Positions 7,297-63,593 of a stretch of DNA of 64,000 nt are shown here, piece after piece. The notes under the pieces are model-generated. The model was given only the letters and a program-made list of their open reading frames with translations. It did not search any database and was not told where the DNA came from. A program made the translations under genes and the position numbers. The DNA lies in assembly GCA_001938485.1 (NCBI GenBank), contig MQRK01233895.1:1-64000 (forward strand), given 5' to 3'. Position 1 is the stretch's first letter; each line of letters begins with the position of its first letter. This DNA comes from Girardia tigrina. Lineage: Eukaryota.

Positions 7297-8926
7297 AATT
7301 TAATATAAAAAATCATTTTTTATAAAAAAATATGTATTTCATATAAAAATATCAATTTAATATGAAAAAAATCAATTTTTATGGTATTAAAAATAAAATA
7401 TTTGTTTAATTATTTATACTATTTAGACTTTTTCAAATTATTAAATACGATCGATCTGTTCACTATGGAATTCACTACTACTCAGAGAGGTAATTTGGTC
7501 CTTATTTATCTAGAGTTTGAGTACTCTAAATTTCACACTAATAATTGAGTCATAACTTGGAGATGCAGGCAGCATCAAAGTACAAGATGTCATGCTTTCC
7601 TTAAGTCATCTGACGACCATAGTACCATTGTGTGCTTTCCATGTAACCAATCACATCATTCCTGCCCTCAGAAGGTTTTGGCAAACATTGCTCAAAATAA
7701 AATGAAGGTTGCAATGAAAGAAGTAGGTGCCACTACCCGAAATGTGATGTGCCATGCATTACGAAGCTTGATCTTGGACATTCTTGGTCATATGCCTAAG
7801 AAATCATCAATTGTTAGTACCTTGCATAGGCAGAAACAGGCTGATCATATTCCCAATCCAACTGCACCTGACTTTGTGATTCCTGACAAATATTCTGTAC
7901 TAGTTTTGTATGATTCCGGGACTAATGATCCTAACAGAGTTTTCGCATTTGGTGACAGAGACCTGTTACTTAAACTTTGCAATGACACCATTTATGGTGA
8001 TGGAACATTTGACAAGTCACCTGACATATTTTATCAGCTTTATACTTGGCATTCTCAAATAGGTACATAATATCCACCTTGCATTTACTTTCTTTTGCAA
8101 AAAAAGGATACAGAAACCTATCACACGATGTTTCAAATTCTAAAACAACTACTGCCGCAGTTGTCACCAACAAAAATCTTGGTTGATTTTGAAAAAGTAT
8201 GCATGAATGCGGCAAAAGTCACATTTCCCGATGTAGATGTTCGAGGTTGCTACTTTCACTTCTGTCAAAGTCTTATCAGAAAAGTCAACACTTTTGGATT
8301 AAATAATGAATATGAAAGCAACATTGACATCAAACTTAGGCTAAAATCACTTTTTGCCTTGGCTTTTGTGCCTGATACTGATGTCAGGAATGTTTTTGAT
8401 ATTCTTGCTGCAACATTCCCTGATGAGGATAGATACAATGAAATTCTCACATATTTCTTATCAACTTATATTGAGGGTGCTCTTGGTAGAGCTCCTCAGT
8501 TTCCAATAAGATGTTGGAACCATTTCGATTCTGCTGGTGAGCAAACACCAAAAACTACAAATTGTTGCGAAGGTTTCCACAATGCTCTTAATGCCATATT
8601 TCAATGCAGCCACCCCTGTATTTGGACCTTACTTGATGGACTTGGAAGAGATATAACTTGTCACAGACTGACTTTGGTAAATGCACTGTCAGGTCGTTCA
8701 GAGGTTGTAAAGAAAAAATATGTATCATTGAGTGAGGCTATTGCAATGGCTGTGCATGATTACAATTTGAATGCATCGAATGTTGATAAACTGAAATACT
8801 TGCGTTGGCTAGCTAATTTGCAATGAATAAAATGTTAAAAATTAACCTTTACTGTGTCGAATTAATAAATGTGTCGAATTAAAAAATTTGTGTCGAATAG
8901 TACGTGTGTTGAATTGTCTGGTTACC
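7144..8926 (+). mobile_element. Mutator-like (MULE) DNA transposon
   Basis: ~80-bp imperfect TIRs built from AATTCGACAC repeats (7144-7228 / ~8842-8926) flanking a transposase; no clear TSD. Confidence 0.9.
7465..8826 (+). pseudogene. FLYWCH-MULE transposase with two in-frame stops
   Basis: One frame throughout: MEFTTTQRGN..WRC..C (FLYWCH), YGDGTF, LVDFE, GCYFHFCQ, TTNCCEGFH. Stops at 7546 and 8068. Confidence 0.9.
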
Positions 8927-16835: not shown

Positions 16836-17520
16836 ATGCTTCAGTCGCATATAAAACGTGTAGCTTGCATATTTCTTTCTTGCTTTAAAGAATTTGCTGA
16901 GCACAGGGAACTCACAAGACACATTAAGAATGTGCATATAGCAATTGCGCGGACGACACAGAGAGATGGTAATTCATTCATATGTCCCATGGAAAACTGC
17001 CACGAGAGTTACAAAACTGATATATGGCTACAGCGGCATTTTTTAATTAATCATCGAATTCAAAGTAATGGTCCTACGATCACCAAAGTAGTACAAAGAG
17101 CAAAAACAGAGAGACTTACTGGAACTTTGAACTTGAACACGGAACATGATACGGCAGTGTCTGTCGGTGTAACTGATGAGGACTGTCCAGGAGTAATCCT
17201 TAGTGTGGCCCTGAGGTTTTTGCTGGATAATATAATGGATAGGGAAGTCTCTCACTTCCCGTTTCCATGGTGCACTAAGTGTGATTATACAGCCAAAAGT
17301 CTTCAGAATCGAGGAACGAAGGAACATGACTATTCATTTTTCAGGGGGAAGCAAAAGTGTGCCCGTAGATTGAAAGCTCGCACTCTTGCATCCAATGCCA
17401 TGTAAGACTATTAGAAAACTTTGTGTTTGTCAAATAATTTCTACCCCATACAGAGTCTATGATTCACTAACCTGTGCACCAATGCTGAGTATTATTAGTA
17501 ATACACAGTTATCCGTCACA
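16836..17520 (+). mobile_element. C2H2 zinc-finger ORF, probably the N-terminus of an RLE-type (R2/NeSL-like) non-LTR retrotransposon
   Basis: CIFLSC..LTRHIKNVH, FICPMENC..LQRHFLINH and a third CTKC; intronless and truncated. Confidence 0.55.
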
Positions 17521-26059: not shown

Positions 26060-26460
26060 TCGCACTGAGAAGAGTTACCGGCCCTGAAACGAAATAATTA
26101 ATTAAAAAATCCGACAGAAAACAAATAAGTCACCTCTTGGACGACCCGTTGTTGTTAAGAGGTCAACCGACCCCCCCCACGTATATCCCATTATAAGACC
26201 AACCCTTGACGAAAACTCACCAGGTCGTGAGATACCCTCATGAAAAGTTATCAACCCTAAAAAGAAAATAATCAATTAAAAACCATACAGAAAATGACAA
26301 AGTTACCTCCAAGGTGAGCCATTAACGTTATAAGACCAACGGACCACCCACTTGTAGCCCCGGAGACGAGGAATCCTTGAAGACCACCCGCAAAGTTCTG
26401 ACACGTTCCCCTGAAAAGTTATACCCCTGAAAAGAAATATAAATTAATTAAAAAGAACAA
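26060..26460 (+). repeat. Degenerate tandem repeat, period ~170-173 bp, ~2.3 copies
   Basis: AAGTTA..CCCTRAAA..GAAAT..AATTAAAAA recurs at ~26082, 26255 and 26425. Confidence 0.75.
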
Positions 26461-27733
26461 AGGTTAATTAAGTGAAACAAAGCACGGTAAATAAAACTTA
26501 CGGTGAATCAGGCCCACAAAGAAAGATCAGCGTTACGCGATGAATAGTCATCGGTGACAAAGGAACCTTGTGACGAAGCAGTTTGGACATGCTGCATGGA
26601 AACTACCCAGCTCGACAAATCAGAGTTTGAAAATAACCAGCCTGGCCAACCAGAAGCAGCCACGATTAGAAGACACCCCGACAAACGAAATGGTGAGTGT
26701 TATAAATACGATATTCACTCACAATTATTTGCACAATTTTTTCACGATTCTTGCAAATTTTCTTGCACAATTTTCTTGCGATATTTGCATAATTTTCACA
26801 ACTTCGACCAAGTTAAAAGAAAACATTCGGAACGTGTGACCAGAACTCGACGCGAAGACAACTACGAAGAAAAGGAACCCCGACTAGGAGACGTACAACT
26901 AGACGAGGACTCGACGCCGTAATTGACGAAAGAGGACGAGCGATAAAAATCTACCTGTAAGTAATCTACCTGCGACGAGCGACCCACAGATGTTTCGATC
27001 CGAGTGACACGCCGACGAAGGAAAGTATCAGACGACCGAGACATTCAACCGGATTCCCGATTTTAACTGTAAATTTTAATGTATTATGTTGATTGATTGC
27101 GGGTTATTAATATTTATCGTTTAATAAACGTCTCGGATAATATTATTACGGTTTTATTTTATTCGGTTCTATTTTATTTTTTTAATTTTTTTTATTTATT
27201 TATCGTAGCTATTTAAGAAGTTTTAATGAACTGTTTGCGTAGTAAACACTTACCTTCCGTACCAGAGTAGGTTCATCCCCGTCGCCGCCGTCACCGTTTC
27301 TCAGTGGGATGCCCCAAGGCGTCATGCGTTTGAGCACTCCGATAGAGCGCATAGAGGATCACCCAGTACCGATGATTAACAACGTCTTTTCGATTTCGAT
27401 CGAAGCGTTTCTTGGGGGGCGCTGTATTGAATCCTTGATCGACATCGTAGGATCGCAGGTTCATCCATACCGAGCGAGATAATCGTGAATTCACACCCCA
27501 ACTTTAATTTGAATTCAAGCGACCTTCGATCGAAATTCATTTATATTATTTCAACAAATATATTTTGGCGCAAATTTTATTCAGAGTTTTCATTTTTGCG
27601 AGAGAGGTTTTTTCGAGTTTTAGTTTTTATATACATACGATTTTATCGTTACCAGTAACTTCACCAGAAATTTAATCCTTATTTTATGAATTCTAGGCAT
27701 AACGTTGTTGTTCTAAAGGAAATTTTACTAATT

Positions 27734-29367
27734 TGTTACGGCGAATTTAGTGTTGATCATGATTGCGATAATAATCTGTTGATAAATTCTTTTTTATTTA
27801 TCGGTAAAATGAAATTAGTGATTGAATATCGATAACTCTGATTTTTAAGACAATAGTGGTGGAGTCACTTGGGAAACAATTGAATTTCAAATATAACTTT
27901 TCCATAATTTTAGTCATTTTGTTAAATTGTTTTTATCTTTGATTTTAAAGTGGAGTTTTGTTAATAATAATTGAAAATTAATTATCAATCACATGGTTTA
28001 GAGATTTTAGATGATGTATATAAATAGGGGTGTGGTTTTTCGATTACAGTTAGTAAATAGAGAATTTAGAGTCTTGATTTAGAAATTTAATTTACCATGG
28101 TTTCGGAGTTAATCGCATAAACATAACTAAGCTGACTTGTACGAACTGCAAAGGACGAAAAGTAAAATTAGGAAGTGAGGATTGTAAAAATGTAAAGAAT
28201 TACCTCGTCAATGCAGCTGTTTTATAAGAAATTAGGCTAAAATTCTTTTTTGATATAAATTATTTAAAAAAATTGAAGATGTGTCTACAGGTTGCTATGC
28301 AATTCGTACTGACAAAACAAATAATTTTTTGATTTTATTGTTATCACGAAATTTAAGAAAGTAGGATTGTAATTGCATCTTATGAGTAATTTAGTTAATT
28401 TTCGCCATTCACTTTAATTTGAGAATTTTCGAATTGTTTCTAGGAGCTCTTGCAAATAATTAACTGGAATTGTCAAATAAAATTATTAACTGGGATTTAT
28501 ATTGACGTAATTATTTTACCGATTTACGGATAGAATTTTGTTTTGTTTGGAATGAAATTGGAAGTTAAATTGAAAATTAAATCGAGATTTCTTTAATACA
28601 ATTACAAGTTATTGAATCCCTAATAAAGAAATGATATGAATTATTATTTTGTTGCAGCTCGTAATTTAATTTTGATAATAATCTAATTTTGATAATCTAA
28701 TTCATAATAATTCATAAATCATAATTTAATTTGGATAATAATAATTACTTTGATCGATATAAATATATTTGTCATAAATATTAATACAAGTGATATGAAT
28801 ATAAATACAATTGTTGTATGGAAATAATGAATCCGTGCAAGATGCAAAGAGACCGATTGTCGGTATGCTGCGAAACAAATGAGCTACACAACGGTAACGA
28901 TACATACTGTTGCTGATAATACTTTTAGAAACCCAACAGTGCTACAAGTCACATTACACAACATTGCCCTAAGCTCAGCATCACATAACTCTAGGCCACA
29001 AGTTATAAATCGACATAACAATGCAATAAGTTTACACGCGTATATAACAATGCCTCAAGTCTCCGAGATATAGACATACAGCAGGGTAATAAGTTTCATA
29101 TCATACATCACAGTTTTATAATACACAATAAATATAACAATAGATGATAGGGCTTCGAATTATAGTTAGGAAGAATATCATCCCCGAGCGACACTCCGCT
29201 AGGTGGGGGGCCCATAGCCCATCCCATCTTTATCCGAACCCGCAGGCCCTTCAGACTCGGCACTGCCAGGCAGATGTCGAGCGAGAAGAGGTGTCCGACC
29301 CTATAATAGAATAAGTAATGTATGGAATTATAGTTAATTAAGACTGGGTTGTGGCTGACCCGTAACA
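27734..29367 (+). mobile_element. ~1.6-kb LTR followed by a partial tRNA-Pro-like PBS
   Basis: Terminal inverted repeat TGTTACGG / CCGTAACA; TGGGGGCTC starts 5 nt downstream (29373). Confidence 0.65.
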
Positions 29368-42639: not shown

Positions 42640-43219
42640 ATAAATTTTGTGGTGCTAAATTATGACTTTTGGAATTTATAATGCAGTCAAAAGTATTGGT
42701 ATGTCTTTTAGAGCCTCTAAGTGTGCCATTCTTGATATCCCATACAAAAAGAACACACACATAACAATCGACCATGCAGACATACCACATCTTGAAGTTG
42801 ACGAGGGATACATGTACTTAGGATCATTTATAGGTCGCATTGTCACATACACATCTGAGAAACTATTCTCTGACATCCTCGCTGACTTAAATTTTATTAA
42901 CATGTCACTCCTCCTTCCTTGGCAAAAACTGCATGCATACATGTTATTCGAACACTCTAAATTTATCTTTAACTTTAGAAACTCATTCATTCCATTTAGC
43001 AAGCTAACAGAGTTTGTTACAGGATGGGATATCAACATTAGGAGATTTTTCAAGGATGTACTAGGAGTACCCGACAACAAATCAACACCCTACATCTATA
43101 TTTCTCGTTCCAATGGAGGAGCTGGAATGACTTCTGCCATAGATGAATATATAATCCAATCCATCAGTCACTCCTTTTACATGTTAAACTCCACTGACCC
43201 AAATATTTCAGAAGCTGCC
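42640..43219 (+). mobile_element. RLE-type (NeSL/Utopia/R2-like) non-LTR retrotransposon RT fragment, runs into a gap
   Basis: GMSFRASKCA, YMYLGS, LLPWQKL and YIYISRSNGGAGM motifs. Confidence 0.85.
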
Positions 43220-47151: not shown

Positions 47152-47328
47152 ATGAGTAATACAAAGCCTTCAAATTCAGGTAATTTTAATGATTATTGTA
47201 ATACGTTTCGAATTTTGTCAGAAAATATTGTGTTAGAGGGATCAGATGAATTACAGAGTATAATTGAACCCGACCAGACTTATTTAAAAGACCGAATCGA
47301 AATTCCCGATGACGACGACCAAATTTAT
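47152..47328 (+). CDS. Nramp: NRAMP/DMT1 (SLC11) transporter, probable first coding exon (N-terminal tail)
   Basis: ATG-initiated frame ending ...QTYLKDRIEIPDDDDQIY, resembling the NRAMP 'TYFxEKIxIP' N-terminal motif. GTTAGT donor at 47329; phase 0 joins in frame to the exon at 51211. Confidence 0.75.
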
Positions 47329-47581
47329 GTTAGTTCTATATTTAATGGCGGTCCTGAAACGATCTTTTCGTTTGTATATTTGTTTTAGTTGAACAATTTT
47401 CATATTCCCACTGCTCAAATATTATATAAATTTAAAAAATAAAAAATAGAAAAAATCAATTTTAAAAAATAAAGATTTTTCAAAAATTTAAAAACAGAAA
47501 AATAAAAACAATTAAGTGTGTACTTGTGTATCGGTCCTGCTGGTTTGAGATTGTAAATTAATGGAAACAGTTTAACTACTT

Positions 47582-47870
47582 TCAGGAATATTTTGAATGT
47601 TTGATGTTTTGTGTTTGAATGTGTATGTTGATTTGTAATTGCGTCTCTCCTACCCAGATGGATGATTAATGTTTGAATTTTTTGTTATCTGAAAATATGT
47701 AATGTTTAAATTTATTTCTAATTTAAAGTGATTATAAAATTTTAAATAAGTCGATTAATTTTTAAGTAAATAAATTAATTTAATATTTTTTAAATAATTA
47801 ATAATCATTTTAATTTTTAACTAATAAAATTTATAGTAAATATTTTAATGGACAATTTAATCTCCATTTA
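47582..47870 (+). repeat. LTR-like repeat family copy (NRAMP intron 1)
   Basis: AGGAATATTTTGAATGTTTGATG...GTCTCTCCTACCCAGATGG. Confidence 0.75.
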
Positions 47871-49502
47871 CTCCATTTGTCAAGTTGCGTTGCAAAGCTT
47901 CTATCTATTAGTATCAGTGAATGATGTGACGTTCTGATTTATCTTCAACAAGACGTATTTATGCTCAAAGATTTCAGTAAAATAAGAATACAATCAGCGT
48001 AATAATAAGGGCTGCAAAAAAAGCAACGTTTACTCCAAAGAAACCCAGAATTCGGATTCACTTGCATTATATCATGAAACTTTTCAATGACACTTATAAG
48101 CGTTAGAGGTTCTTCCTGTGTTTACGAGTTTTTTAATGTTGCATTTTCAATACCATGGAAGAAACGAAGGGCAATATTTAATGATTGGAAGAAATTAATA
48201 ATGATATGGACTCAAGTGACAAAAGTCGATCCAAAGAGGTGGCCAGTGAGGAAAGTACTGATTAAGATTATACTTTCAGTGATATATTTAAAATAAATAT
48301 TCTTTAATAACTAGTACAAAATGTATTATTTTTTTGAAAATAAATGTATTCGTACTATTGTACTTTAATATAATCAGGTTCTTTCAGTCCAAAATAGACT
48401 CTTCCATCACATCGTATTGATATTATATATTATAAATAATAATATATATTATATATTATACATTATGCGGGTACGAAATTTAAGTCTCGAAAATTAAAAT
48501 TTTCAAAAATGAAAAATTCAAGTAAAATATATAAAAAATTAAAATTCATAAAATTTTAGAAAAAAATTACTTATAATAAAAATATAAAATAATAGAATAA
48601 TATATAAACATAATTATAAATATAAAGAAATTATAAATATATTTTTTTGGCTATGAAGAAATAGTTAATTAAAATTTTACTGATGGAGAATTAAATAATT
48701 AAATATTATTTAAGATTAAAATCAAATTAAAAACTTTAAGTTAAATATTTAAATAATACTTTAAAATTGAAGTTTTCATTTTTATTATTTAAAAAAACCA
48801 ATTAATTTTCGAAACTTAAAAGTCGTGCTCCGTACATTATAAATGATATACTATTAATTAAAATTTTCTGTCTTAAACGATTTTTTAAGTCTCAAAATAT
48901 TTTATTTATTAAATTCTAATTTTAATATTTTTAAATTTATTCCATTTTATAGACAAATGTCTGTTGATTTGTTTTCGTTAATATTTAAAAACAATTATAG
49001 TGTTTCCACTTATTTTTAATGAAACAATATATTAAAAATATTTAATTAATAATTGAAACTGATAAATTGTTTACGACAAATTTTTTTGATCTAATAATAT
49101 ATTTAAAAATTAGTCATTTGGTGATAAAAAATCGCGTAACAAAATTTGGAAATCTCTCATCTGCGGATTATAATGAAAATGAATGTCTGATTAATTGGAT
49201 AATGATTTATAAGCGTTTACAAAATTAATTTAAATATTTATTGTGAAATAAGAATATTGGATACCTGTTGATCTTATAAATTTAATTTTTATAATTAATT
49301 TTGACAAAATAACTTATTAAAAATGCATGATCATGTGCTTCAATCTCTTGATTTGCGCAATTTCACACATAAGAATTAAATAGTAAAGCGTGATAAATTT
49401 CAATTAATTAATTTATAATTTGAATTAAAGCAACGTTTCGAATATTCTGACATGTTTTTCATGATGTATTTCAGAGTACTCTAGAAAAGGGACTTTTGTA
49501 AT

Positions 49503-49820
49503 TGTGAGGAATATTTGGTGTGTAATTGTTTTTTTGTAGTGTTTGCATGTTTAAATATTGTGTGTTGATTTGGGATTGTGCCTCTTCTAATCAGATGGAT
49601 GATCGATATTTTATTTCTTATAATCTGAAACTAATTTATTTTAATTTAGATTTAATATTCAAATTTTTAATTTTTATTATTGCAACTTTTAAATAATTTT
49701 ATTTTTGTAAATTTTTAAATAATTAAAATCAAATTAATGTTTAAAAATTATTATAAAAATATTTTATTTCAGCCAATAAAATTTTAATTAAATATTTTTA
49801 AATAAAATAATCTTCTCAAG
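49503..49820 (+). repeat. LTR-like repeat family copy (NRAMP intron 1)
   Basis: TGTGAGGAATATT start; degenerate core CTCTTCTAATCAGATGG. Confidence 0.7.
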
Positions 49821-51210
49821 TATAGTTCAGATTATAATGAGAGATATTGAAAATTGAGTGATGGATTATAGTGAAAGCAATACTATTGATCATCATAAAG
49901 ATGATAAGAAATGTGAATGTAATAAATGTTCTGTCAAATGTGGGAGTTCTCTTTACAGTAATAAATCATAACTAATGATAATTATTATCGAATTATTTAA
50001 TTAATAAAATTATATATAACTTCAAAATTGATTCATGTAATCCGTAATTGTAGTGTTTAACATTGATTTTATACCTTAACTTAATGTTCTTTTGTTTCAA
50101 TGCACAATTGTTTTGTTGGGATTCATATTAATTATCAGACATCCAATTAATTTAAACAATTTTCAAGTATAAAACTGTAAAATATAAAGTTAAGTCTTTT
50201 AGAATAATTTCAATTATTTTCATCTTTTAATTGACTCAATAGTTTCCTAATATGTACATCTTAATATAATGTATATAAATTTCAATTTATTTCAAAGTTC
50301 TGTTTATTAATTTGATTATTTAACTGATTTTTACTTGAAACGGAAACACGAAGTCTATGGAAATATTTTTTTTAATTTCTGTGTCTTAATTTTCATCATC
50401 AGAACAAATGATTTGCGTAAAGAATTATTCATGTTGTACTGTTACGATTTATGGAATCATTATATCAGCAGATCATATGAATAATACTTCATATGCTTCT
50501 CCAATAATTCTTAAATGGAGGGCAGCAGACACGACAAATTAATTTCTGTTTCTTAAATTTCTTTTATTTAATTTTATGAAATTATCTTATTATTATTTAT
50601 TAAATTTTAATCATTTCGACCTTATATTTTATTATTGACAAATTATTAATTAAACTACATAATTAACTTTCTATTTAATGTATGTTTAATAGAAAATTAA
50701 ATACATTTTGTTTAATTTGTCAAAATTAATTAACAAAAAAATTTCAAATACCTAAGTTTTTTATTTTCGATAATATTATAACTGTATTCAATCTTATTTA
50801 ATATCAGTGTTCTCAATTAACACCATAAAAGCAATGTTATATTTCCTTATTATGAGTTCCATAACACTTAAACATATGATCAATAGTTGAATTTTTTCTA
50901 GTAATTTGGTATGTTCAGCCATTCTAGTTCGAGGATGAAAATTTGTCTCTTCAATATGCTAAGATTCACATTTGAAATAGTTATAAACTTGTTTTCATAC
51001 CAAATTGTGTTTTATGTTTTTTCGAGAAAATTAGATATATTATTAGTTGAAAACAAAACTCTTTTTATAAAACTAACTGGATCGTATGTTTCTCCCACTC
51101 ATGTAAATTCCTTTTTACATTCAGCGTATGGCAATTTAAATTATTTACAATTAATTAGTTTTATTATTATTTTTAATATTTAAATTACAAAACTGTATTA
51201 ATATTTTAAG

Positions 51211-51339
51211 GAAAAGTCAAGTTTTAGTTTCAAAAAATTATGGGCTTTCACTGGTCCAGGATTTTTGATGAGTATAGCTTATTTAGATCCTGGCAATATA
51301 GAATCAGATTTACAAAGTGGATCAATAGCTAAATTTAAG
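51211..51339 (+). CDS. Nramp: NRAMP exon (TM1, DPGN motif)
   Basis: ttttaag| [43 protein letters not shown] |gtttgt; signature NRAMP TM1. Confidence 0.97.
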
Positions 51340-51416
51340 GTTTGTTATTATTTCAAATTCAATTGTAAATATCGATAATTCTTTAATTAACTTAAAAAAT
51401 ATTTTTCTTTTTTTAG

Positions 51417-51596
51417 CTATTGTGGTTACTTCTTCTCGCTACATTTTTGGGTTTACTAATGCAGAGATTGTCTGTTAGATTGGGGGTTGTAACTGGAATG
51501 AACCTAGCCGAAGTCTGTTATAGACGTTATCCTAAAGTACCAAGGGTACTTCTTTGGATAATGATAGAGATTGCAATAATCGGTTCTGATATGCAG
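51417..51596 (+). CDS. Nramp: NRAMP exon (TM2-TM3)
   Basis: ttttag| [34 protein letters not shown]...[10 protein letters not shown] |gttcat. Confidence 0.97.
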
Positions 51597-51642
51597 GTTC
51601 ATTTTTAATAAATTAATATTTTAATGTAAATCAATTGAAAAG

Positions 51643-51828
51643 GAAGTGATCGGAACAGCAATAGCATTAAATTTATTAAGTAATGGTCTAATACCACTTT
51701 ACGGGGGTGTACTAATTACCATTGTTGATACATTTACCTTCCTGTTGCTCGACAAATATGGATTACGAAAATTAGAAGCATTTTTCGGTTTCTTAATTAC
51801 AATAATGGGAATTTCATTCGGATATCAG
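51643..51828 (+). CDS. Nramp: NRAMP exon (TM3-TM5)
   Basis: aaag| [13 protein letters not shown]...[24 protein letters not shown] |gtgttt. Confidence 0.96.
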
Positions 51829-52475
51829 GTGTTTGTAACTAATTGAATTTTTTATTTATACTTTTTTTATTTTTATGTCTTTTTTTATGCCTTTTATTTA
51901 TACTTTATTTGTTGTCTAAACCAAATATAACAAAATTATCTAAGATTATAGAAGATTGATATATTATATATTAACAAAAAAATTTCAAATGCCTAAGTTT
52001 TTTATTTTCGATAATATTATAACTGTATTCATTTCATTTCGTTTATTTTCCGATCAAATTCGTAATCGTTAACTATATAAACATTGTTAAATAAATTTAT
52101 AATTTTTTTATAAAAAATCATTTAATCCTATGTTAAATAATAATCATCAACAAGAACCCACAAGCAAAAACATAAACATATCAGACAATGAACAGAGCGC
52201 AAGAACAGTAATAAGATCGGGTGTTCAAATATCACTTTTACAAGGATCTCAACAGGCAGCAACCAGCGACTTGCAGCACGAACCACATAATAATATGAAC
52301 GTTCCGACTCATTTCATAGGAAAATGTTGGGATGTATTACAAGATCATTGGACAGAAGTAATCAATGAATAACAATTTTGAACAAATTTTAATTAACTTA
52401 TTTATTTAACATTCCTATTTTTTTAGTTTATATAATTTTATAATAATTTTTTATAATTTTTATAATTATAGGATT

Positions 52476-52775
52476 TGTGAGGAATATTTGAATGTTTGAT
52501 GTTCTGTGTTTGAATGTTATATATTGATTTGGAATTTTGTCTCTCCTACCCAGATGGTTGAAAATTATTTTAATTCTTATTATCTGAAAATATGTAATGT
52601 TTAAATTTGTTTCTAATTTCAAATAATTGTAAAATTTTAAATGAGTTAATTAATTTTATTTACAATTTTAAATAAATAAATTGAATTAATATTTTTTAAA
52701 TAAATAATAATCATTTTAATTTTTATCCAATTAAATTTTGAATAAATATTTTCACAATTATTTATTTCTCTATTT
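52476..52775 (+). repeat. LTR-like repeat family copy (NRAMP intron 4)
   Basis: TGTGAGGAATATT start; core GTCTCTCCTACCCAGATGG. Confidence 0.75.
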
Positions 52776-54455
52776 GCTAAAAATAATAAGATTAAAGTGT
52801 TTAATGAATTAGTTATAATGCAATGATACGAAAGCTTTGACAAAGATTGTCTTGTGGACAATCAAATTTGTAATAATAAAAATATTAAGTCACATTGGTG
52901 TTCTTAATAGGATTAATTAACTTTTTAATAATTTTTTTAGTTTATATAAAGTTGCATAAAAACAACTTTAATGATTACAAAATTGATTACAACGATTACG
53001 AATGTGATCGAAAAACCATTTAGTTATTATTCTGTTTATTAACTCTATGTATTTGTGAAAGTAATCTAAGATTCAATGTATCTAAATTGAGAACCTGAAA
53101 CTACTTTCACTTTATTAAATGATAAAAATAAATAAAAATGATATGACTAATTTGTAACTGAATAATGTTTAATTAAATAATTCAACTAGTAACAATCGTA
53201 ACAGGATAAAATAAAATAACCGTTTGTGAAAAATTTGATCTAGTCTTTTAAAACACATTGGGATAAGCCAATAGCAATAATCAATAATATATGCACAGTA
53301 ACAAATTGGTTCGTGGAAAATAGACAGATGATTTCGTTGTATTTGTATCGACACTGGAAATATTCAATGTAATACGGTTGAGATTTTGTAATTGTTTGGT
53401 TGAAATTGGAATCATGGGTTTGGAATCAAATAATCATCGGACTGAACTGACACGATCATTAAAATTAACCATTCATTGTCTAACCAGATGACATAATCAT
53501 CAAATGATAAAAATAATAAATTGCAGCAGACACGACAAATTAATTTCTGTTTTTAAAATTTCTTTTATTTAATTTTATGAATCAATTTTTTATTCATTGT
53601 CGTTTTTATTATGATTTTAAAATTCGTATTATTGCTAATAGCAATTAAGAATTTTAATTATCCTCTAAAAATGATAACTTTCTTATATCAAAAAAATCAG
53701 ACAGATAAATAAAAAAACCATAATAATAGCACATAAAAGAAAATATAAAAAAATATAATAGTTCTTTGATAAAAAAAAATAAAATTACACACTCCAATAT
53801 GCACAAATAAAAATGTACATTTATAGTATTATTATATGCAATAAATTGTTTATTTTTTATTGTTTTTATTGTTTTATTGCGAAATCACAAATCAATACAG
53901 TGATTCGGCACGACCAGTTTGTTTCTCTGTGGTACTAATTGACAACATATATTCAGTCATGCAGTGTTTGAACATGTTATTATAATGACGTTTTAATTGA
54001 TGAAATAAATAAATCTTTAGTTATATAGGTTTAAGAAGTTTATACAAAGTACTATATTTAGAAGTTACTTTAATTGATGTTTCAAATAATCTTAAAAGGA
54101 GCTGAGTAATTTCGCCTTCCAGATAAATCTTGATTTTAAATTGTCTTTTGTTTCATTTCTCTCTTCAAACCACTTTTTTTAATCTTTTAATAATTCTATT
54201 AGTTATTTGTTTTCTGTCTGATAAAATTTTTTGAATAAGTAAATTGTATATAATATAATAAATACATAAAAATATAATTAAATCCTTCAATAAATATGAA
54301 AAATATAATGTATATTCAATTGACGAAATAGTATTTCTTTTATAGTTGTATATATATTTCGGTATAGTTTTTGGTATTCGTATTAAATATTCTATTTTTT
54401 TATATAAAAATCTTACATTTAAAACAATGTTTAACCTATCTCAATGTAACTCTAG

Positions 54456-54770
54456 TACATCGTGGTGAAACCTAATCAAGCGGAAGTTTTAAAAGGAATG
54501 TTTATTCCGTATTGCGAAAATTGTGGGAGTAAAGAACTTGTACAAGCAGTTGGTATAATCGGAGCTGTCATTATGCCACACAATATGTATTTGCATTCCG
54601 CTCTTGTTAAATCAAGAAATATCAATCGAAACCGACGAGACAAAATTCGTGAAGCAAACTTTTACTTCCTCATCGAATCAGCTTTGGCTTTGTTCGTGTC
54701 GTTTTTAATTAACGTTTTTGTGGTATCAGTATTTGCGGAAGGTTTTTATGGAAAGAATACGACAACCATT
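54456..54770 (+). CDS. Nramp: NRAMP exon (TM6 MPH motif, TM7)
   Basis: tctag| YIVVKPNQ...[24 protein letters not shown]...FYGKNTTTI |gtaagt; metal-binding Met/His residues intact. Confidence 0.97.
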
Positions 54771-55039
54771 GTAAGTTTATTCATCATCATTGAAATATTA
54801 ACATAGGACTAATTCATTAAACTATCTAGATATGATTATAAATTCGAGTTTTTTAAAGTACTACATTTTACTAGAAAAGGTACAACCTGTAACGTATTTT
54901 GACTTATTACTTTCATTTATAAAATGTATTTATTTTTAAAAATTGAAACAAATCTAATGCAATTTACCAAAAATTAATTTTTGAGTAAGATTGTAAGATA
55001 AATTCATCTGGTAGAGTTACAGCCCAGGGGAATTTTTAG

Positions 55040-55990
55040 ATTTGTTCAAGGTTAAATACAATATTTTTCTTTAATACACAGCTCAAATCATCTTCTATAT
55101 CAAGATTGTTCCTAGATTTTGATTTTATAAAAATTAGAGAAGAAACGCCTTTTTCAAACAATGTCGTTTAAAAGACCATATGATACATGATTTTTTTCTA
55201 ATAAATAGAATACTCGAATGATAGCTTTATCCAAAAGTGACTGAGGGATAGATATTTGGAATCAGTCTTTGCACAGTCACTGTTTAATAACTCGTTGAAA
55301 TCCTCTTAGCAATTTTTAAGAACACGAGAGATTGAGATATTTGTTCTGTTTCAGGAGATTAATGGTACAATTAATCTTTGAACGTCTGGAGATGCTCTGT
55401 CAGTAGGATTTGAAATTTACTACCTAATTCGATGTCATTTATTCCGTATATGAAACATCATTAAATCTCTGTAGTCACAGATCCAGCTTCCTTCGAAATA
55501 AATTAAGTTTTTCAATATAATCTACAATAATTGCATTTGCTCCTTGCTGTGATAAGTTCAATGAATTTAATATGAATTTAAGGTGTCTCCGAAATAAACG
55601 CTTCTGGAAATTTGCGTTTTGTTTCTGAACTTTCTACAAGATTTGTTTTCCCACATTTATCAAAATATTTTACTTCACTTTTAAACTCAAAGATCCGCTG
55701 CAGGTAATATATTTTAATGTGTAAAACTAGGTTCTCATATTTTACATACATTTCTTGGCAAATTTGAAAACAAACAACTGCTGATAGCATTTTCAAATTA
55801 AGTTGACTCCCTTCAGAACTGATTGAAGGAAGTCTTTAAAACATAACATCAGTGTCATCACTGCTAGTTTTACAACTATTTATGGAGATTCCCTTTTCAT
55901 CAGGTGTTGAAATACGGATCAAGAACTTAACATAGCAGGTACATCATACTTGCGAACATCACAGGCATTCTTACATTAAAAAACGATGGA
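55040..55990 (-). pseudogene. Highly degenerate hAT (Buster/FAM200-like) transposase
   Basis: Remnants YENLVLH..RIFEFK, LNLSQQG, LNLFRRKLDL, FWIKL, FEKGVSSL..KSKSRNNLDIEDDL. Confidence 0.6.
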
Positions 55991-56235
55991 CTTTCGCCAA
56001 ACACATCTTGATAAAATAAATACATTTGAAGAGTTTTTTTTAAGTTTTGGAATATTAGCGTAATATTTTAAACAGCATGGTTTCGGAAAATAACGTTTTT
56101 GAACGATTTCTTTAAGGTGTTATTTATATAAAATATATATAAATATGAGAAATTTATATATTATTATATTAAATATTTCTATTTTAACTTAATTTTTTCT
56201 TATATGAAACATTTTTGATTTTTTTATACTTTCAG

Positions 56236-56283
56236 CTGGATGAATGTGAAATTAATAAAGTACCTCATTGGCAAATTTTCAAT
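56236..56283 (+). CDS. Nramp: NRAMP 48-nt micro-exon (TM7-TM8 loop)
   Basis: ttttatactttcag| LDECEINKVPHWQIFN |gtaagt; strong splice sites; conserved loop Cys and PH..F. Confidence 0.8.
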
Positions 56284-56539
56284 GTAAGTTATTAATTAGC
56301 TTATTTCGTCACATAGTTATAAAAGTACTAAATAATTATATAGTTCTATAATGATCCAATCACATATTTTTTAAATGATCGCGTGAAATATACAGTTTAA
56401 GTTAATTTCATCTTGAAATTTGAAACAGTAAATTTTACCGAAAAACGTCGATGATTCCTATATGTATGAATCTGATTTATGTATAACTTGTTTTCATCAC
56501 TTTTTGATTTTCTTTCACTGTTTTCACTATAAATTTAGA

Positions 56540-56855
56540 AGCAGCCTAAGTTTTTGAAAGTATTTATGTGGATATTTGCGGTCTGTGGAAAGAGATTTCT
56601 GGAAAAAGGGAATATATTTTGTACGTTATTGATCAGTCCAGTAAATATATTTCCGTTAACCGCAACATCGAAATAAGATGACGGGTCTATAATAAAATGA
56701 ATTATACAAAATTGTATACTAGAATTTTGCTCTCCAAAGACAATGAATGTTTTTTGAGTCAAAAAAGATGACAGAAATTTGAAATTCGATTCTCTAGTCC
56801 ATATCATCATAACACAAACGGACAAATTAAAAGACAATTTCGTCCAGTAAGAGAA
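56540..56855 (+). pseudogene. Gypsy integrase core fragment
   Basis: IYVDICG..EYILYVIDQSSKY; SSPYHHNTNGQIKRQFR. Confidence 0.7.
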
Positions 56856-57890
56856 CACAACACCGCATGGAAGAAACTCATCACTCAGATCGATGAATCA
56901 GTCTGATCCACGTTCGACAATTGTCCAAATCAATTAAAATTATACCATCGTAAAAGTTTTCAAAGAACTCAATCGAATTTATTCATTTTCTCAAACGAAA
57001 TCATTTAAAGTTGAAAATACCTTCGCAAAATAGGTATCCTTAATAATTTGACAACCTACTGTAAGTAACTCAATTTTTCTTATACTAAATCTCTGGTGGC
57101 TGAAATAGCTAAAGGACCAATTCCCAACAGTTTTTAATATTTGAATTCAGTTAGCTTAAATGAATTGTTTCTATTTTTTTCAAAAACATGTGCCCCCACA
57201 AATGGTGTCTCGAAATCTCTGGATTTCTTTATTTTTCAAATTTATTGAGTTATATTATTAAGTATTAATTTGTAAAGAAATTCATTATCTATTCACATAT
57301 TTTTAAAACGAACTTTATAATTTATTTTATTTGGTTCGTGCTCTATGTCTCCATAACAAATATTTCAAATAAAATAATAAGGTTTTCAGAGTATAAAATC
57401 GTTTAAAATGTTCAGACAAGGGAATATTTAAAGTATTACGAAAAAAGATGTGATGAATATTTGTATTAGTAAAACAGTATTAATATTAGAGCTGATATCT
57501 GTTATAAAAATCAAAATAAAATAATAAATAAAACTAAACAATCTATGGTTAAATATTTGACATTCAAGGGTAAGGAGTTATAAAATATATCTGAAACATG
57601 TCCTGAGATGGTCATCAACCAGGCTTTCATATGACATTATTTATGCGTATCTCTGTCTCGTAATGAACAATATTGATAGATACAATCTTTATACTTAGTT
57701 AAGTTCGCTGATTCGAGAGATTTACGTTAATCTTAGATTTCAAGTTTAATTTATACCAAATTATTTATTAAAATTATAAAAAATCGTAAAAAATATTTTT
57801 ATTTTTCTTGAAATTTATATTTTAATCAGAGAATATATAGACGGTTTGCACATTCATGAATCATTCGAACACGTAATATTATTATACTTG

Positions 57891-58180
57891 TGTGAGGAAT
57901 GTTTTGAATTGTGTGTTGATATTGTGCATGTTTTATGTTGATTCGGATTGTGTCTCTCCTACCCAGATGGATGATTGGTATTTTCTTTGATTCCTACTAA
58001 TTAAAAATAATTTAATTTAATTTTAAAGTAAAAAGATTTAAAATAATTTTTGAATGTATTATTTATTTTTTAATGTAATTTAAAATTTTAATATATTAAT
58101 TTAATGTTTTTTTAAAAAAATGTTTAGATTTAATTTTAACCAATTAGATTCTTTGTAATTAATAATTTTTTATTAACAGA
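57891..58180 (+). repeat. LTR-like repeat family copy (NRAMP intron 6)
   Basis: TGTGAGGAATGTT start; core GTCTCTCCTACCCAGATGG. Confidence 0.75.
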
Positions 58181-58858
58181 TTTTCATTTATTGAAAATAA
58201 TTAGTATGAACTCAGAAATATATCGATCAAGAAAAAAGTCAAATAGTGAATGCGCTTGTGATATTAATAAATGTTGTAAAACTCATATCGATGTTGTTAA
58301 TAACTTGCATAATTACAAACCCGTAATTGTTATGAATGTTCTTATGAACTCCTCCCCAAAACTCCTTTTCTTTACATTATCTGCATGAAATGACTTTTTA
58401 TCTTTTACTCTTTTTAAAATGAAATATTTTTTGTGATCTTTCATTCAATATCATCTAATAAAATATTAAAAAAATACTTTGAGCAATTGACAATTTGAAT
58501 GCGAATATTTACTGATGAATATTTGAGTTAACCTGTCGTTTGCCAAATTCACTATATCCACGCCACTGTGCGTGCAGAACTCTCAAAATACGGATTTTGT
58601 GTTGGTAACAACGCAGGTATGTAATTCCCTTTGGAATGAGTCTTAGTACAACAGTTACAAACGAGACTAATGGTGATATCTATTGAAGTCATCATCTCTA
58701 ATCTCTGATTATTTATTCACATGTTACTAAGAGATGTTTCCATATATTGTATTCCACATCTTCCTTATTGATTCGCGATACCTCTTCACTCTGTTAGTGC
58801 GCTTACTTGACCGCGATAAATCTTCATTTAAAATATTTTTGGTTAAGTTTTAAAATAA

Positions 58859-59096
58859 CAGGGTGCCCCGTAGAAAACCAAAGTGTATTTAATTAAACAT
58901 CGAAATGGAAGTAATTCTCAAGGCCACAACTTAATGAATTCCACGTCTTCGAAAGTGTTGCAACAATGACGGAGAACATTTCGAACACCTCCGAACAGCA
59001 GCTTTATTTATGATTTTTTTTGTTTGCATTTATCACGTGTTTAATTACATACACTTTGGTTTTATAAAATCCTTCGGTTTTCTACTGGGCACCCTG
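58859..59096 (+). mobile_element. mariner-derived MITE
   Basis: TIR CAGGGTGCCCCGTAGAAAACC / GGTTTTCTACTGGGCACCCTG|TA; retains a transposase C-terminus (RLRKCCNNDGEHFEHL). Confidence 0.8.
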
Positions 59097-59539
59097 TAGT
59101 TTACTCATATGTATGAATAATTATATAATATTTCTAATATTTTGATATATACAATTTTGATAATTACAAGTTCTCATTTTTTTGAAATTGAACTTTTGGT
59201 GATGAAATAAAACAGTCTTAGAATTATGTCTTGTTTAAGATTTAGGTTAAAAAATAACGATTAAAAACAACAAAAATTAAAAAAAAATGACTGTAAAATT
59301 CGAGTTTTTAAGGAAATTAGAAATAACTAAAATTATTTATAAATGATGGAATAATTTAATTTATTCAAAATATGAAATAACTTTAAAAGTGACCAAAAAG
59401 TATATAATTTCAATAATTTTGTTCCAAACAAATCTATATAATACTGGTGCCTCGATATATATGTTTTTGCATTTTGAATTTTTATGTAAACGTAAAAAAT
59501 CATTTTACTTTTATTTATTCGGTGAAATATTCGTTTGGT

Positions 59540-60621
59540 GAATCCGGTGTTTTTAGTATTGTCCCTTGCGCCATAAACTGACTAGTAGGAACTATTTTCC
59601 GTGCTGAGATCAACCCTTGTACTAATGTACTCTACAGGCCAAGCCCTAGACTTGAGTAATGTCACCAACAACTCTCTCATCGCCAGCGGATAGAGTCATC
59701 GAAGTCATTTTTGCCATGCTTCACGGGACCGGGGGCATCACGGACCCCCAGATTGCTCAGTGAATGACGTTACATACGATGCATTCCACGCCAGGTCTGC
59801 AAAGTTTGCAATCAGTCCAGCTATCTCATCCTCCCAAAACAAAACATTTCAATAGGGAGAATAAGATTACCGACACTTCGAGCTTACCTCCTTACTCTTT
59901 AGCAGTGCTCAGTTAAAATACCGGTAGCAACTAGCGCTAATTGCTTAGCACCAAAAAAACATTTCAAATGTTACTACCTACTGCCATGAAGTAATTCAGA
60001 CCGTTAGAGGGTACAGACCGCATAACGTCCCTAGTTTAGTTCATGAACTACCACACTGCTCCAATAGATCAGACCTGTATAGATCTCAACCATTAAAAGA
60101 AATCGCTAATATGGGCAAAAACACATTTCAATATACTCACATTTGGCTGATTGAAAAAAAAATCAATCCATTGTTACAATGCGACAGTCCACTATCCGGG
60201 GACACTTCGTGGATGTATTAGTTTATTCTGGCTTGTGCGTGTATACCCTTGACAAACTAGAAACCCTCCCAATCGGCACAGGAGGGTAAAAAATCGTTTC
60301 TAGCCGTCTGAACACGACCCGAATCATGTACAACAAACAAAACATTTCAAAGGTTGTACTTCCTCAGGAAGAGTATATCAGTGAAGCTCACATGTCGTGC
60401 TCTGGAACGTGAAATTAAATTTCTATCCCATTGCTGACTACCGAGTTAAATTAGAGCAGTACAGTGTTCGTGTGTCCTTCGATCGATCGGGCCGAGTAAG
60501 TAAGTCGTCTTACGCATACGTCTTTCGGGTACTTTAGCCTAGAGACAGGAGTCGAACCCGCTCTATTTTCTCAGGGATACTACGTAGAAGTAAACCCACC
60601 TGGCCGCACAGGCGATCCCCG
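59540..60621 (-). mobile_element. ~1.08-kb tRNA-headed SINE-like element, highly structured
   Basis: 11-bp TSD ATTCGTTTGGT (59529-59539, 60622-60632); A-box-like CGGCCAGGTGG and B-box GGTTCGACTCC on the - strand; no ORF; higher GC than the flanks. Confidence 0.8.
60537..60613 (-). promoter_or_regulatory. tRNA-like head / internal Pol III promoter
   Basis: Acceptor-like GCCTG/TAGGC; T-arm GCGGG-TTCGACT-CCTGT; A box 60606-60596, B box 60558-60548; anticodon arm degenerate. Confidence 0.75.
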
Positions 60622-61358
60622 ATTCGTTTGGTACAAGTTCAAGCACCTTGAACGGATTAAAGACGTCTCTCGAGGTACTACTTTATAAGGAATTTTAACG
60701 GCACTTACTTTGTCTTAATATTCTACATAATCTAAATTATTAATTATATTAGATCAATGTTTCTTTAACTGCCGCCCACCAAAAGATACAGAATGTTTGG
60801 TTATTTCATTCTCACCTAAATGATAAACGTCACTTTTTTGATAGTTTATTTACGTAGAGAAGTAAACATAGGGAGGGCGTAGATCATCAGTTACCGTTTA
60901 ACAGTAATTAATAATTAGTTATAGATTGTTATTGTGGGAAACGTCGCTTAAACTTAGTAAGTCCATCTTAAATTGTTAAGATTTTAAATCACAATGGTAC
61001 AGTGATATACTTTTGCCTTCAGTAAATAATAATTAATAATAAAAATTATATAAATAACTCTATTTATCTATGTATCTATTTAACTACGTAGATAGTTTCA
61101 TATCGAGCGGATATCTTAACAGACATCACTGTCGAACATTATATCTATTAGTTCGTCTTATTTAAAAATTTTGAATTTAATTTTTGACACTATAAAATTA
61201 ATGAAAAGTAAATTGAAAATTAAATTTTTCACAATGATATAAATCAAAATATGAACTTTTTTCTCTTTGTTATTTTTTTAAATTTTCCTGATTATCGCAT
61301 GCATTCCAAAATCTGTTTTCAATATTCTAATCATGTAATAACTACATTAACCTATGTA

Positions 61359-62586
61359 CAGCTGTTGCAAAAAGTTTAGCATATTCATAAAAATCACTGA
61401 TTTGCGGAATTCTGTCCTCTATATAAGTATACTAACAGCACACTTAATGTTTTGCATAATTTCACCGTATTTCAGTCAATTATTTTAATGTTCTTTTTAG
61501 ATTTTTGAGAATTGAAGGTCAGACATATCGTATTCATTTCAAGAATGCCGCGAAAACAAGAGGTTACCAACGAAATCAGAGCCATAATTGTTACTTACAA
61601 ATACTGCGGCTGAAAGTGGATGTTTCTCGTCGTGTGCGAATTAACCAGTCGATTGTATCACGTACCTTGAAGAAATACCGAGAACGTGGTGATTTTTCAT
61701 CAGCTTTGCAACGTAGAAGGCCCAGTGTGACATTACCACAAACAGAATGGTACGGCGTGTGTCAACGGAATATGAGTCAAGGAAAATGCAGGAGAATTAC
61801 CAAATCCCCCATCTCTTGGTTTTTGGCTTAAAAGGGTGCAGACTTGCGAAAAAACCTTTTCTCTCTCACAAGAATATAAAGGACCAAAACACCCTTTATA
61901 AGAAGTATGGCTCTTGGACGCCAGAAATGTAGAGTCGTGTGTTATTTTCGATGGAAGTCAATTTTTAATAATTCAATAGTTACATTCAATATGTTCGTCG
62001 TCCAAAAAATACATGCCATAAGCTCAAGTACACATTAGTAACTGTGTGACATTCACTTTTCCTCATGATCTAAGGTTTTTTTCTGTTGAAGTGAGGCAGG
62101 ATATTTGTATTTCTTACCCATGAACACAACGATGAAGGCTCCAAATTTCCTCAATGACGTTTTTGATTTTTGACGTTTTTGCAATCATTTCCAGCACGAT
62201 GTCGCGCCTAGTCATAAGGCCAAATTTGTATCAAACTGGTTGACTGCTGAAGGTATCGAGGTGTTGTCGTGGCAAGGACAAAGCCCAAAACTAAATTCCA
62301 TTGAGAATATTTAGATGAAAATGATACACAGACTTTCAATGGAGAAGCCTTCTAACAAGTTTGACCAGTCGAACTGCCTTTTGTAATGTTCTGTCTGACA
62401 GCATACCTCGTCGTATTCAAGAGGTCTTGAAAAATAAAGGATACAATTCTATATAATGAATTCTGCTTGTTTTCTGTCCATTAATAAGTTGTACTTCAAT
62501 AAATTTTTCTGTGTATGTTTTGTATCTTGAGAATTTTGATATTTTTCTAAATTTCGCTAAATATGCTAAACCTTTTGCAGCTGTTG
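61359..62586 (+). mobile_element. Degenerate Tc1-like (DD34E) transposon
   Basis: TA|CAGCTGTTGCAAAAAGTTTAGCATATT and a matching right TIR; motifs AKKPFLS, FQHDVAPSHKAK, WQGQSPKLNSIENI. Confidence 0.88.
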
Positions 62587-63554
62587 ATATAATCTTGTTT
62601 TCATTAATGTTGTTAATGTTTCTATCCTTTTTCTATTATATTTGATGTTTAGTTTTATTTTGCATGTGTTAGGTTCGGGCATGTTTCAAGTACCCATATT
62701 AGATACAAACTGAAAATTAGACATATTTTCAAAATTATATTTCATTACGAATTTCTGTTTATTTAAACAAATTTCCGAGAAACATTATTTTCTATTAACA
62801 AAACTTTATAAATAAATATAGTGTTATAAATAATAAAATATAGTTATAAATAAATATGAATACTTAAAAATTTCAATTTAAATTTGACCTCCTCAATTGT
62901 CAAATTTATAATTTCTCAATTTTAAGGATTTAAATTTTTTTAATTTTACAAATTTAGTTTCACAATTTTTAAAATTTACAATTTTAAATATTCAAAATTT
63001 TTTGTGAGCACAAAATCCTAAAATGTGTTAATTAAATATTTAAAATAATGGACATAAGTCGAATAAAAAGATTTTTAAATACGAATGAATCTTGTTAGTA
63101 ATTAAATAAATTTACTGTTAAAATTTTTAGTTTAAAAAAGAAACTATAAATTGAAATAAAGGTAAAACGTTTTTATTAATTTTTAAAATTAAATAAATTA
63201 AATCAAAGTAATAGTCTCACAACTTTAAAACAATTCGAAAAAGAACGCATTAAAGATGAAAAAAATTACGTTAGTTCTAAAATTGCAATCAATGACACTA
63301 ACCTTTTCTATACAAAAACTACTAATTTATATATAATACTTTCTTTACCATATCAAATATTTGTATATTAGCAAATAAGATTATTATGTTGAAATTATAG
63401 TTCATGTTCTATTGAATATTTTTAGTCACTGCAATCTGTGTGACTTGTGCTACATCATTTGCATTTAATATAAGAATGAGTCGGTTGAAAAATTTTTTAT
63501 TAAAATAATTGTAAAATTGGAAATGTCATTTATTAATTAATTTTAATTGTTTAG

Positions 63555-63593
63555 ACAACAGATGCCCTCGATGATATAGATATCTACAAAGGG
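63555..63593 (+). CDS. Nramp: NRAMP 39-nt micro-exon (DIYKG); gene continues beyond the window
   Basis: tttag| TTDALDDIDIYKG |gtacgt; matches the NRAMP 'VDIYKG/GVVLGC' motif. Confidence 0.85.

Follow-up and report, generated by a model that had tools for sequence, protein, structure and literature searches.

A non-coding 1.1-kb element with an HDV-like ribozyme fold at its head, probably retroposed, and four U-rich loops that may pair with its insertion junction

What kind of element presents the same U-rich sequence four times on stems that share nothing with one another, and what might such loops do? The question was raised by a first-pass annotation of the 64-kb window (the whole stretch of DNA analyzed here, 25% GC and transposon-rich animal DNA), which described four hairpins with a common loop inside a Pol III-type element headed by a tRNA and transcribed from the minus strand. 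The exact 9-mer was found where that annotation had placed it, at 59844, 59959, 60123, and 60342, and it constitutes the core of a 16-nt repeat (identity 13 to 16 of 16; spacing 115, 164, and 219 nt). The comparison with shuffled sequence that had been proposed was run, and none of 5000 dinucleotide shuffles of the surrounding GC island contained any 9-mer four times; across the 64 kb, no second 600-nt window held a cluster of this kind. Aligned in register, the flanks of the four copies are identical at 7 to 15 of 40 positions and are thus not homologous, in agreement with the earlier description of unrelated stems and spacers. An old tandem duplication was therefore rejected, as no recognizable one is present. 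On the plus strand, the motif matches a vertebrate miR-203 site; this possibility was set aside, as that strand shows no structure and the host appears to be an invertebrate. The four copies lie within the following unit.

59540 to 60621, minus strand: full length of the element, 1082 bp with 44% GC, against 25% for the genome; one copy in the window

Folding of the element body favored the minus strand as the RNA strand, as had been assumed, with a z score of -2.4 compared to -0.1 for the plus strand. The RNA is predicted to form a branched rod of nested long-range helices (e.g., 60397/59871, 60390/59879, 60375/59893, 60249/60008, and 60191/60044, with predicted probabilities of 0.85 to 0.96), with the motif modules as side arms.

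59871 to 60397, minus strand: nested long-range helices of the branched rod; prediction only, no covariation
60318 to 60368, minus strand: module with motif copy 60335-60350; 18-nt terminal loop on stems of 7 bp and 6 bp
60108 to 60143, minus strand: module with motif copy 60116-60131; loop or partly paired, two competing registers
59923 to 59978, minus strand: module with motif copy 59952-59967; bulge of 16 nt that separates two 9-bp helices; of the four, the one that pairs best with the anti-motif described below
59823 to 59867, minus strand: module with motif copy 59837-59852; 13-bp stem, two of its pairs G.U, closing a 19-nt loop

The proposed hairpins were recovered for two copies, where stems 59823-35/59855-67 and 60328-34/60353-59 each have a pair probability of 0.99 (random-flank p of 0.002 and 0.01, respectively). 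In place of the stem suggested at 59946-50/59972-76, the 16-nt bulge is favored; its flanking helices have probabilities of 0.96 to 0.97, and the copy at 59959 is still single-stranded. The outcome at 60123 is ambiguous: the copy could sit in a 16-nt loop closed by a 6+3-bp stem, and a competing helix that buries it has a probability of 0.83 (p of 0.10 to 0.36). For all four copies to be enclosed yet unpaired, the combined p was 0.003 against random flanks. Together, these results support the view that the motif is non-random and that, within a minus-strand RNA that is itself structured, it forms a mostly single-stranded module.

At the head of the element, where a tRNA had been proposed, an HDV-like ribozyme fits far better. 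Its parts, all on the minus strand, are as follows.

60527 to 60621, minus strand: HDV-like ribozyme; descriptor match, features per PMC6326823 and PMC3774820
60621-615/60578-572, minus strand: P1, 7 bp
60613-598, minus strand: J1/2 hairpin, within the HDV-like ribozyme
60597-592/60533-527, minus strand: P2, 6 pairs with one bulge
60591-589/60581-579, minus strand: P3, 3 bp
60588-582, minus strand: L3, 7 nt, UCUACGU with U20, C24, and G25
60587-586/60571-570, minus strand: P1.1, 2 bp
60565-540, minus strand: P4, 9 bp
60537, minus strand: catalytic C of J4/2 (C-U-A-A)

The helices P1, P1.1, P2, P3, and P4 of the nested double pseudoknot occur in the right order, with 7 of 7 pairs in P1, 3 of 3 in P3, and 2 of 2 in P1.1, and the fold is completed by the L3 signature (U20/C24/G25) and a J4/2 catalytic C followed by the conserved A (PMC6326823, PMC3774820). 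A descriptor search, using a descriptor written after the candidate had been seen, returned this single match on both strands of the window (128 kb). By comparison, 20000 shuffles of the island yielded 6 matches, and the rate per shuffled window was 0.04. Of 39 unrelated viral loci that share the core, none went on to complete the fold, and the Rfam HDV models gave no score for the ribozyme head. The predicted cut lies 5' of 60621, with an alternative register 5' of 60620. Register A has C1-G37, U22-A38, and a 7-bp P1, while register B has G1.U37, a 6-bp P1, and a wobble P1.1 (U22.G38); the canonical HDV design fixes G1-Y37 and C22-G38 (PMC6326823). A variant core is plausible, because R2 ribozymes have a P1 of 6 to 7 bp and an often mismatched P2 (PMC3774820), and active trypanosomatid ribozymes vary in P1 orientation and in the bases of P1.1 (PMC4035085). 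The base at -1 in register A is U, the best base at this position for cleavage (PMC1874588). We regard an HDV-like fold of the head (60621-60527) as very likely. Judged from its sequence, the element RNA appears to cut itself free via this HDV-type ribozyme, and with its variant core the ribozyme may be slow or dead.

The signals behind the tRNA reading are present in part.

60548 to 60558, minus strand: perfect Pol III B box or T-loop-like hairpin in P4; found in 0.08% of head shuffles

A weak A-box-like sequence lies in J1/2, and ARAGORN at relaxed settings reported a tRNA-Val pseudogene at 60622-60537, with P3/L3 as its anticodon arm (0.9% of shuffles). At normal thresholds, neither ARAGORN nor Rfam found a tRNA, so that of the proposed tRNA head the perfect B box stands and the tRNA itself reaches pseudogene level only. 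The B box and the tRNA-Val match are what speaks for a tRNA-derived Pol III SINE with sponge loops. Against it, the acceptor stem consists mostly of G.U pairs, six further ARAGORN matches at the same relaxed level occur elsewhere in the 64-kb window, and the ribozyme fit is ~30-fold rarer by chance than the tRNA fit. A Pol III SINE would also have a body free of internal terminators, and the minus strand carries T runs before or inside the loops (T4 at nt 280, T6 at 329, T9 at 460, and T7 at 663 of the element). These would limit a Pol III product to at most ~280 to 335 nt, short of all four loops; with T runs from nt 280 on, the label of a Pol III-type element is not confirmed for the four-loop RNA. 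We consider such a SINE very improbable; besides the non-random motif, what survives of the earlier reading is that the element is probably a retroposon, and the loops may or may not serve as a protein sponge or in RT recruitment.

The boundaries of the element bear on this latter point. Found once in the 64-kb window, the 44% GC island most likely extends from 59520 to 60675, and a direct repeat brackets the element.

60622 to 60632, minus strand: upstream 11-bp direct repeat, immediately next to the predicted cut; candidate target-site duplication (TSD)
59529 to 59539, minus strand: downstream 11-bp direct repeat, where the GC island ends on the left
60633 to 60687, minus strand: upstream flank, GC 0.42, with a 7-bp hairpin (60653-637) and a TATA-like word (60687-681); host flank or element leader

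For a random position, an exact 11-mer adjoining the predicted cut with a second copy at the other GC edge is expected by chance at 0.03 to 0.17%. As in SIDE/NARTc-type elements, the repeat adjoins the 5' end and the 1082-bp element is non-coding; a scan found no open reading frame of >50 codons from ATG and hence no coding capacity. R2/R1 SIDEs likewise carry a 5' HDV-like ribozyme with the TSD abutting the cut, the TSD being 14 bp in the hybrids (PMC3414825). Because the 11-mer abuts the cut and lies at both GC edges, it resembles the footprint of a ribozyme-processed, target-primed insertion, as in Perere-3 (PMC8501958) and the R2/R1 SIDEs (PMC3414825), and we conclude that the unit is probably a retroposed one flanked by a TSD. 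No poly(A) or microsatellite tail precedes the downstream repeat, and no 3' end shared with LINE relics was found inside the 64-kb window. On the other side, the GC change-point lies ~55 nt upstream of the upstream repeat (range 60647-60723), and equal GC is seen in 8.5% of host windows.

The element lies antisense in a host gene.

56284 to 63554, plus strand: host NRAMP/SLC11 intron, 7.3 kb, with the element antisense

This placement follows from small NRAMP exons at 56236-56283 and 63555-63593 that match the expected segment, the exons having been examined one at a time, without a joined spliced model. The closest exon match is 90% identical. Named relatives are only ~70% identical, which indicates that the host lineage is poorly represented. 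As a whole, the NRAMP/SLC11 (Malvolio-like) gene spans 47152-63593 on the plus strand, with introns of 43 bp to 7.3 kb.

A further property of the locus, which like the flanking 11-bp repeat is absent from the first-pass annotation, concerns the U-rich loops and the downstream junction.

59523 to 59540, minus strand: anti-motif, made up of the downstream repeat and the 6 bases that flank it, with complementarity to the U-rich loops

For the loop at 59967, no non-self partner on either strand of the window (128 kb) is better than the junction, and an in silico empty site pairs with this loop at 18 of 19 positions (-20.3 kcal/mol, G.U pairs and mismatch included). Pairing is strong for this one loop only (-18 to -20 kcal/mol), the other three reaching -8 to -13 kcal/mol. 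The junction ranks in the top 0.02 to 0.03% of 30392 windows for loop complementarity, and composition-matched controls gave p values of 0.0003 to 0.003, to which the repeat (p of 0.006) and the flank (p of 0.004) each contribute. The complementarity was noticed post hoc and these p values precede any correction for that; with the post hoc choice allowed for, we estimate the probability of chance at roughly 0.5 to 2%. As far as sequence can tell, this points to base pairing and not only to protein binding. In the geometry of target-primed reverse transcription, the primer strand here resembles the loop motif in sequence, and the displaced strand is complementary to it. Group II introns provide a functional analog in their EBS loops, by which a structured RNA is complementary to its insertion site. 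The bridge RNA of IS110 elements is likewise a functional analogy only (PMC13626964), and, unlike either system, the element appears to have no recombinase, intron core, or homology to them, and its pairing is imperfect. In the literature searched, with most subscription journals outside its scope, no description was found of repeated loops antisense to an insertion site.

Taking these lines together, we give slightly better than an even chance to a non-autonomous, HDV-ribozyme-headed non-LTR retroelement (SIDE/NARTc-like) whose loops pair with junction sequence. A host Pol II transcript, read-through or nearby, would cover the element on the minus strand; the ribozyme, whose fold was recognized by pattern, would cut at 60621 and release an uncapped RNA with a 5'-OH; and the predicted branched-rod body would display the four U-rich 16-mers single-stranded. 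A borrowed LINE endonuclease and reverse transcriptase (RT) would insert this RNA by target-primed reverse transcription, an established mechanism that would leave the observed 11-bp repeat as its duplication. Two roles can be envisaged for base pairing between the loops and the complementary junction sequence. In one, a read-through 3' tail would dock on a loop, where the 3' end of the uncapped RNA would be protected or defined, and annealing of the tail to the primer would then favor similar targets. In the other, the loop would exchange the tail for the displaced DNA strand at insertion, while the tail anneals to the primer. That the loops work through junction pairing at all falls a little short of an even chance in our judgment, and the narrower idea that they are guides or clamps, base-pairing with the displaced target strand across the future TSD and flank, seems unlikely. 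If they were guides, a non-autonomous retroelement would here carry its own RNA-encoded target preference, in a way comparable to bridge RNA or to the EBS loops of group II introns. Against the retroelement as a whole stand the single known copy, for which neither an empty allele nor a partner LINE was seen, the variant core, the missing tail, and the ~55 nt of GC-rich sequence upstream.

Several other explanations must be weighed against this retroelement. The closest keeps the same element and life cycle and takes the loops as protein-binding sites, with the junction match due to chance; the binder would be the partner RT or ORF protein, or else a U-rich RNA-binding protein of the host by which the uncapped RNA is shielded. 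A motif that stays constant and mostly unpaired while its stems vary is what this predicts, short conserved segments persist within the otherwise unconserved sequence of R1 3' UTRs and hybrid SIDEs (PMC3414825), and U-rich loops pair easily with A-rich DNA. Yet the complementarity, whose position the ribozyme and the repeat define independently of it, survives the composition-matched nulls, and we hold this explanation to be rather doubtful. More distant is a host single-copy lncRNA gene, possibly domesticated, with its own TATA promoter, in which the ribozyme would trim a short leader and the 3' anti-motif would be a tail docking on the loops. It would accommodate the GC-rich upstream sequence with its hairpin and TATA-like word, the AATAAA-like words after the anti-motif, and a copy that is unique in the window and apparently intact. 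Such TATA-like and AATAAA words are common at 75% AT, however, and the exact 11-bp repeat at the cut site is left unexplained, so that we consider a lncRNA gene improbable.

Equally improbable in our view is that a circular ribozyme RNA of a retrozyme-like or viroid-like kind was integrated as a monomer of 1093 nt, whose 11-mer would be a terminal redundancy past the circle junction. The ~1.1-kb size, lack of coding, branched-rod fold, and ribozyme at the junction suit a circle, and pairing between the 11-mer and the loops would then arise without target choice. The six bases beyond the repeat also pair, though, which a circle does not predict; the opposite strand has no ribozyme and the plus strand is unstructured; the monomer is single and not tandem; and the circle would have 18 hairpin loops and 65% pairing. 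Animal retrozymes are moreover hammerhead-based and 150 to 300 nt long (PMC7761336). Retrozymes are recognized by tandem hammerheads or ribozymes on two strands, and here neither a complete hammerhead nor any plus-strand ribozyme was found. A hammerhead-like start at the first hairpin was dismissed since the second core is absent, as was a twister-like word near 59730 whose remaining conserved parts are absent. Inspected by eye, the sequence shows no complete signature of RNase P/MRP, 7SK, telomerase RNA, SL RNA, or group I/II introns. Rfam returned no family at the gathering score and, up to an E value of 10, two chance matches only. Homologues of the element were not found in phage, plasmid, viral, prokaryotic, and metagenome collections: BLAST gave no match among phages and plasmids, exact patterns were absent from viral contigs and had one chance match in a prokaryote, and a metagenome scan with a three-motif pattern returned tandem repeats only. 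Two ORFs of the window, looked up as exact sequences, gave no match either.

Among known systems, the favored retroelement resembles the R2 and R2/R1 hybrid SIDEs of Drosophila, with a 5' HDV-like ribozyme, no ORF, a short TSD, and short conserved segments; mobilization in trans, as of the R2/R1 SIDEs, would be a further shared trait (PMC3414825). It differs from them in lying outside the rDNA and in having no evident similarity to R1/R2, and four junction-antisense loops are absent from SIDE descriptions. With NARTc/RIME/SIDER (L1Tc/ingi, Pr77) it shares a ribozyme cut, here predicted, at +1 in a TSD-flanked non-coding retroposon and promoter-like signals that overlap the ribozyme, and in that group non-canonical P1/P1.1 pairs are tolerated (PMC3185411, PMC4035085, PMC3383444). 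Unlike them, it resides in an animal, measures 1.1 kb, lacks a poly(A) tail, and carries in P4 a Pol III B box instead of Pr77. Dispersed insertion with the TSD directly at the scissile bond is also seen in Perere-3 (RTE) of Schistosoma, which carries twister variants; Perere-3 differs in being autonomous, with a twister ribozyme, 3' short repeats, and TSDs that are not sequence-specific (PMC8501958). Retrozymes and the Sm-alpha SINE are likewise non-coding, ribozyme-processed, structured mobile RNAs, the latter combining a ribozyme with Pol III signals (PMC7761336, PMC6765202, 10.64898/2026.07.22.740005); retrozymes differ in being hammerhead-based, tandem, and small in animals, where the present element is a single HDV-like monomer. 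Ribozyme-headed non-autonomous retroposons are known mainly from Drosophila rDNA and trypanosomatids, and the class would be extended by a dispersed animal case of 1.1 kb whose HDV core is variant and whose P4 holds a B box. For the melting of the target by non-LTR elements, and for what then happens to the displaced strand, R-loop models have been proposed and are unconfirmed (PMC3636483). Should the loops pair with the target or a read-through tail, displaced-strand handling becomes testable by comparing loops with insertion sites, and the pairing would hint at RNA-programmable target-primed insertion.

Minor observations were made around the element and elsewhere in the window. A perfect 8-bp helix joins 60659-60666 in the upstream flank with 60518-60525 just past the ribozyme (minus strand); the leader may therefore belong to the element, or the helix may be chance. 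A GC-box-like 10-mer at 60771-60780, which on the minus strand lies ~150 nt upstream of the cut, is a possible promoter element. At the 3' junction, 59512-59542 consists of two imperfect 16-nt tandem units (12 of 15 identical) with the anti-motif spanning the joint, which could be RT slippage or a degenerate tail. The same NRAMP intron holds, by eye, a decayed Tc1/mariner-like transposase relic at 61370-62600, and an ~240-bp MITE-like element with terminal inverted repeats lies at 58859-59097, 450 bp from the ribozyme-headed element. Possible autonomous LINE relics are an R2/NeSL-like RT fragment at 42662-43219, which borders a masked stretch, and an ORF with C2H2 zinc fingers at 16836-17405; neither has a sequence link to the element, and the RT fragment had no database matches within the length limits of the search, full-length kin being outside its scope. 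A second GC/CpG-rich island of ~1.5 kb (26250-27750), without a Pfam match or long ORF, is possibly a transposon remnant. Finally, a frameshifted MULE transposase on the plus strand at 7630-8826 is 60 to 66% identical to copies from diverse animals.
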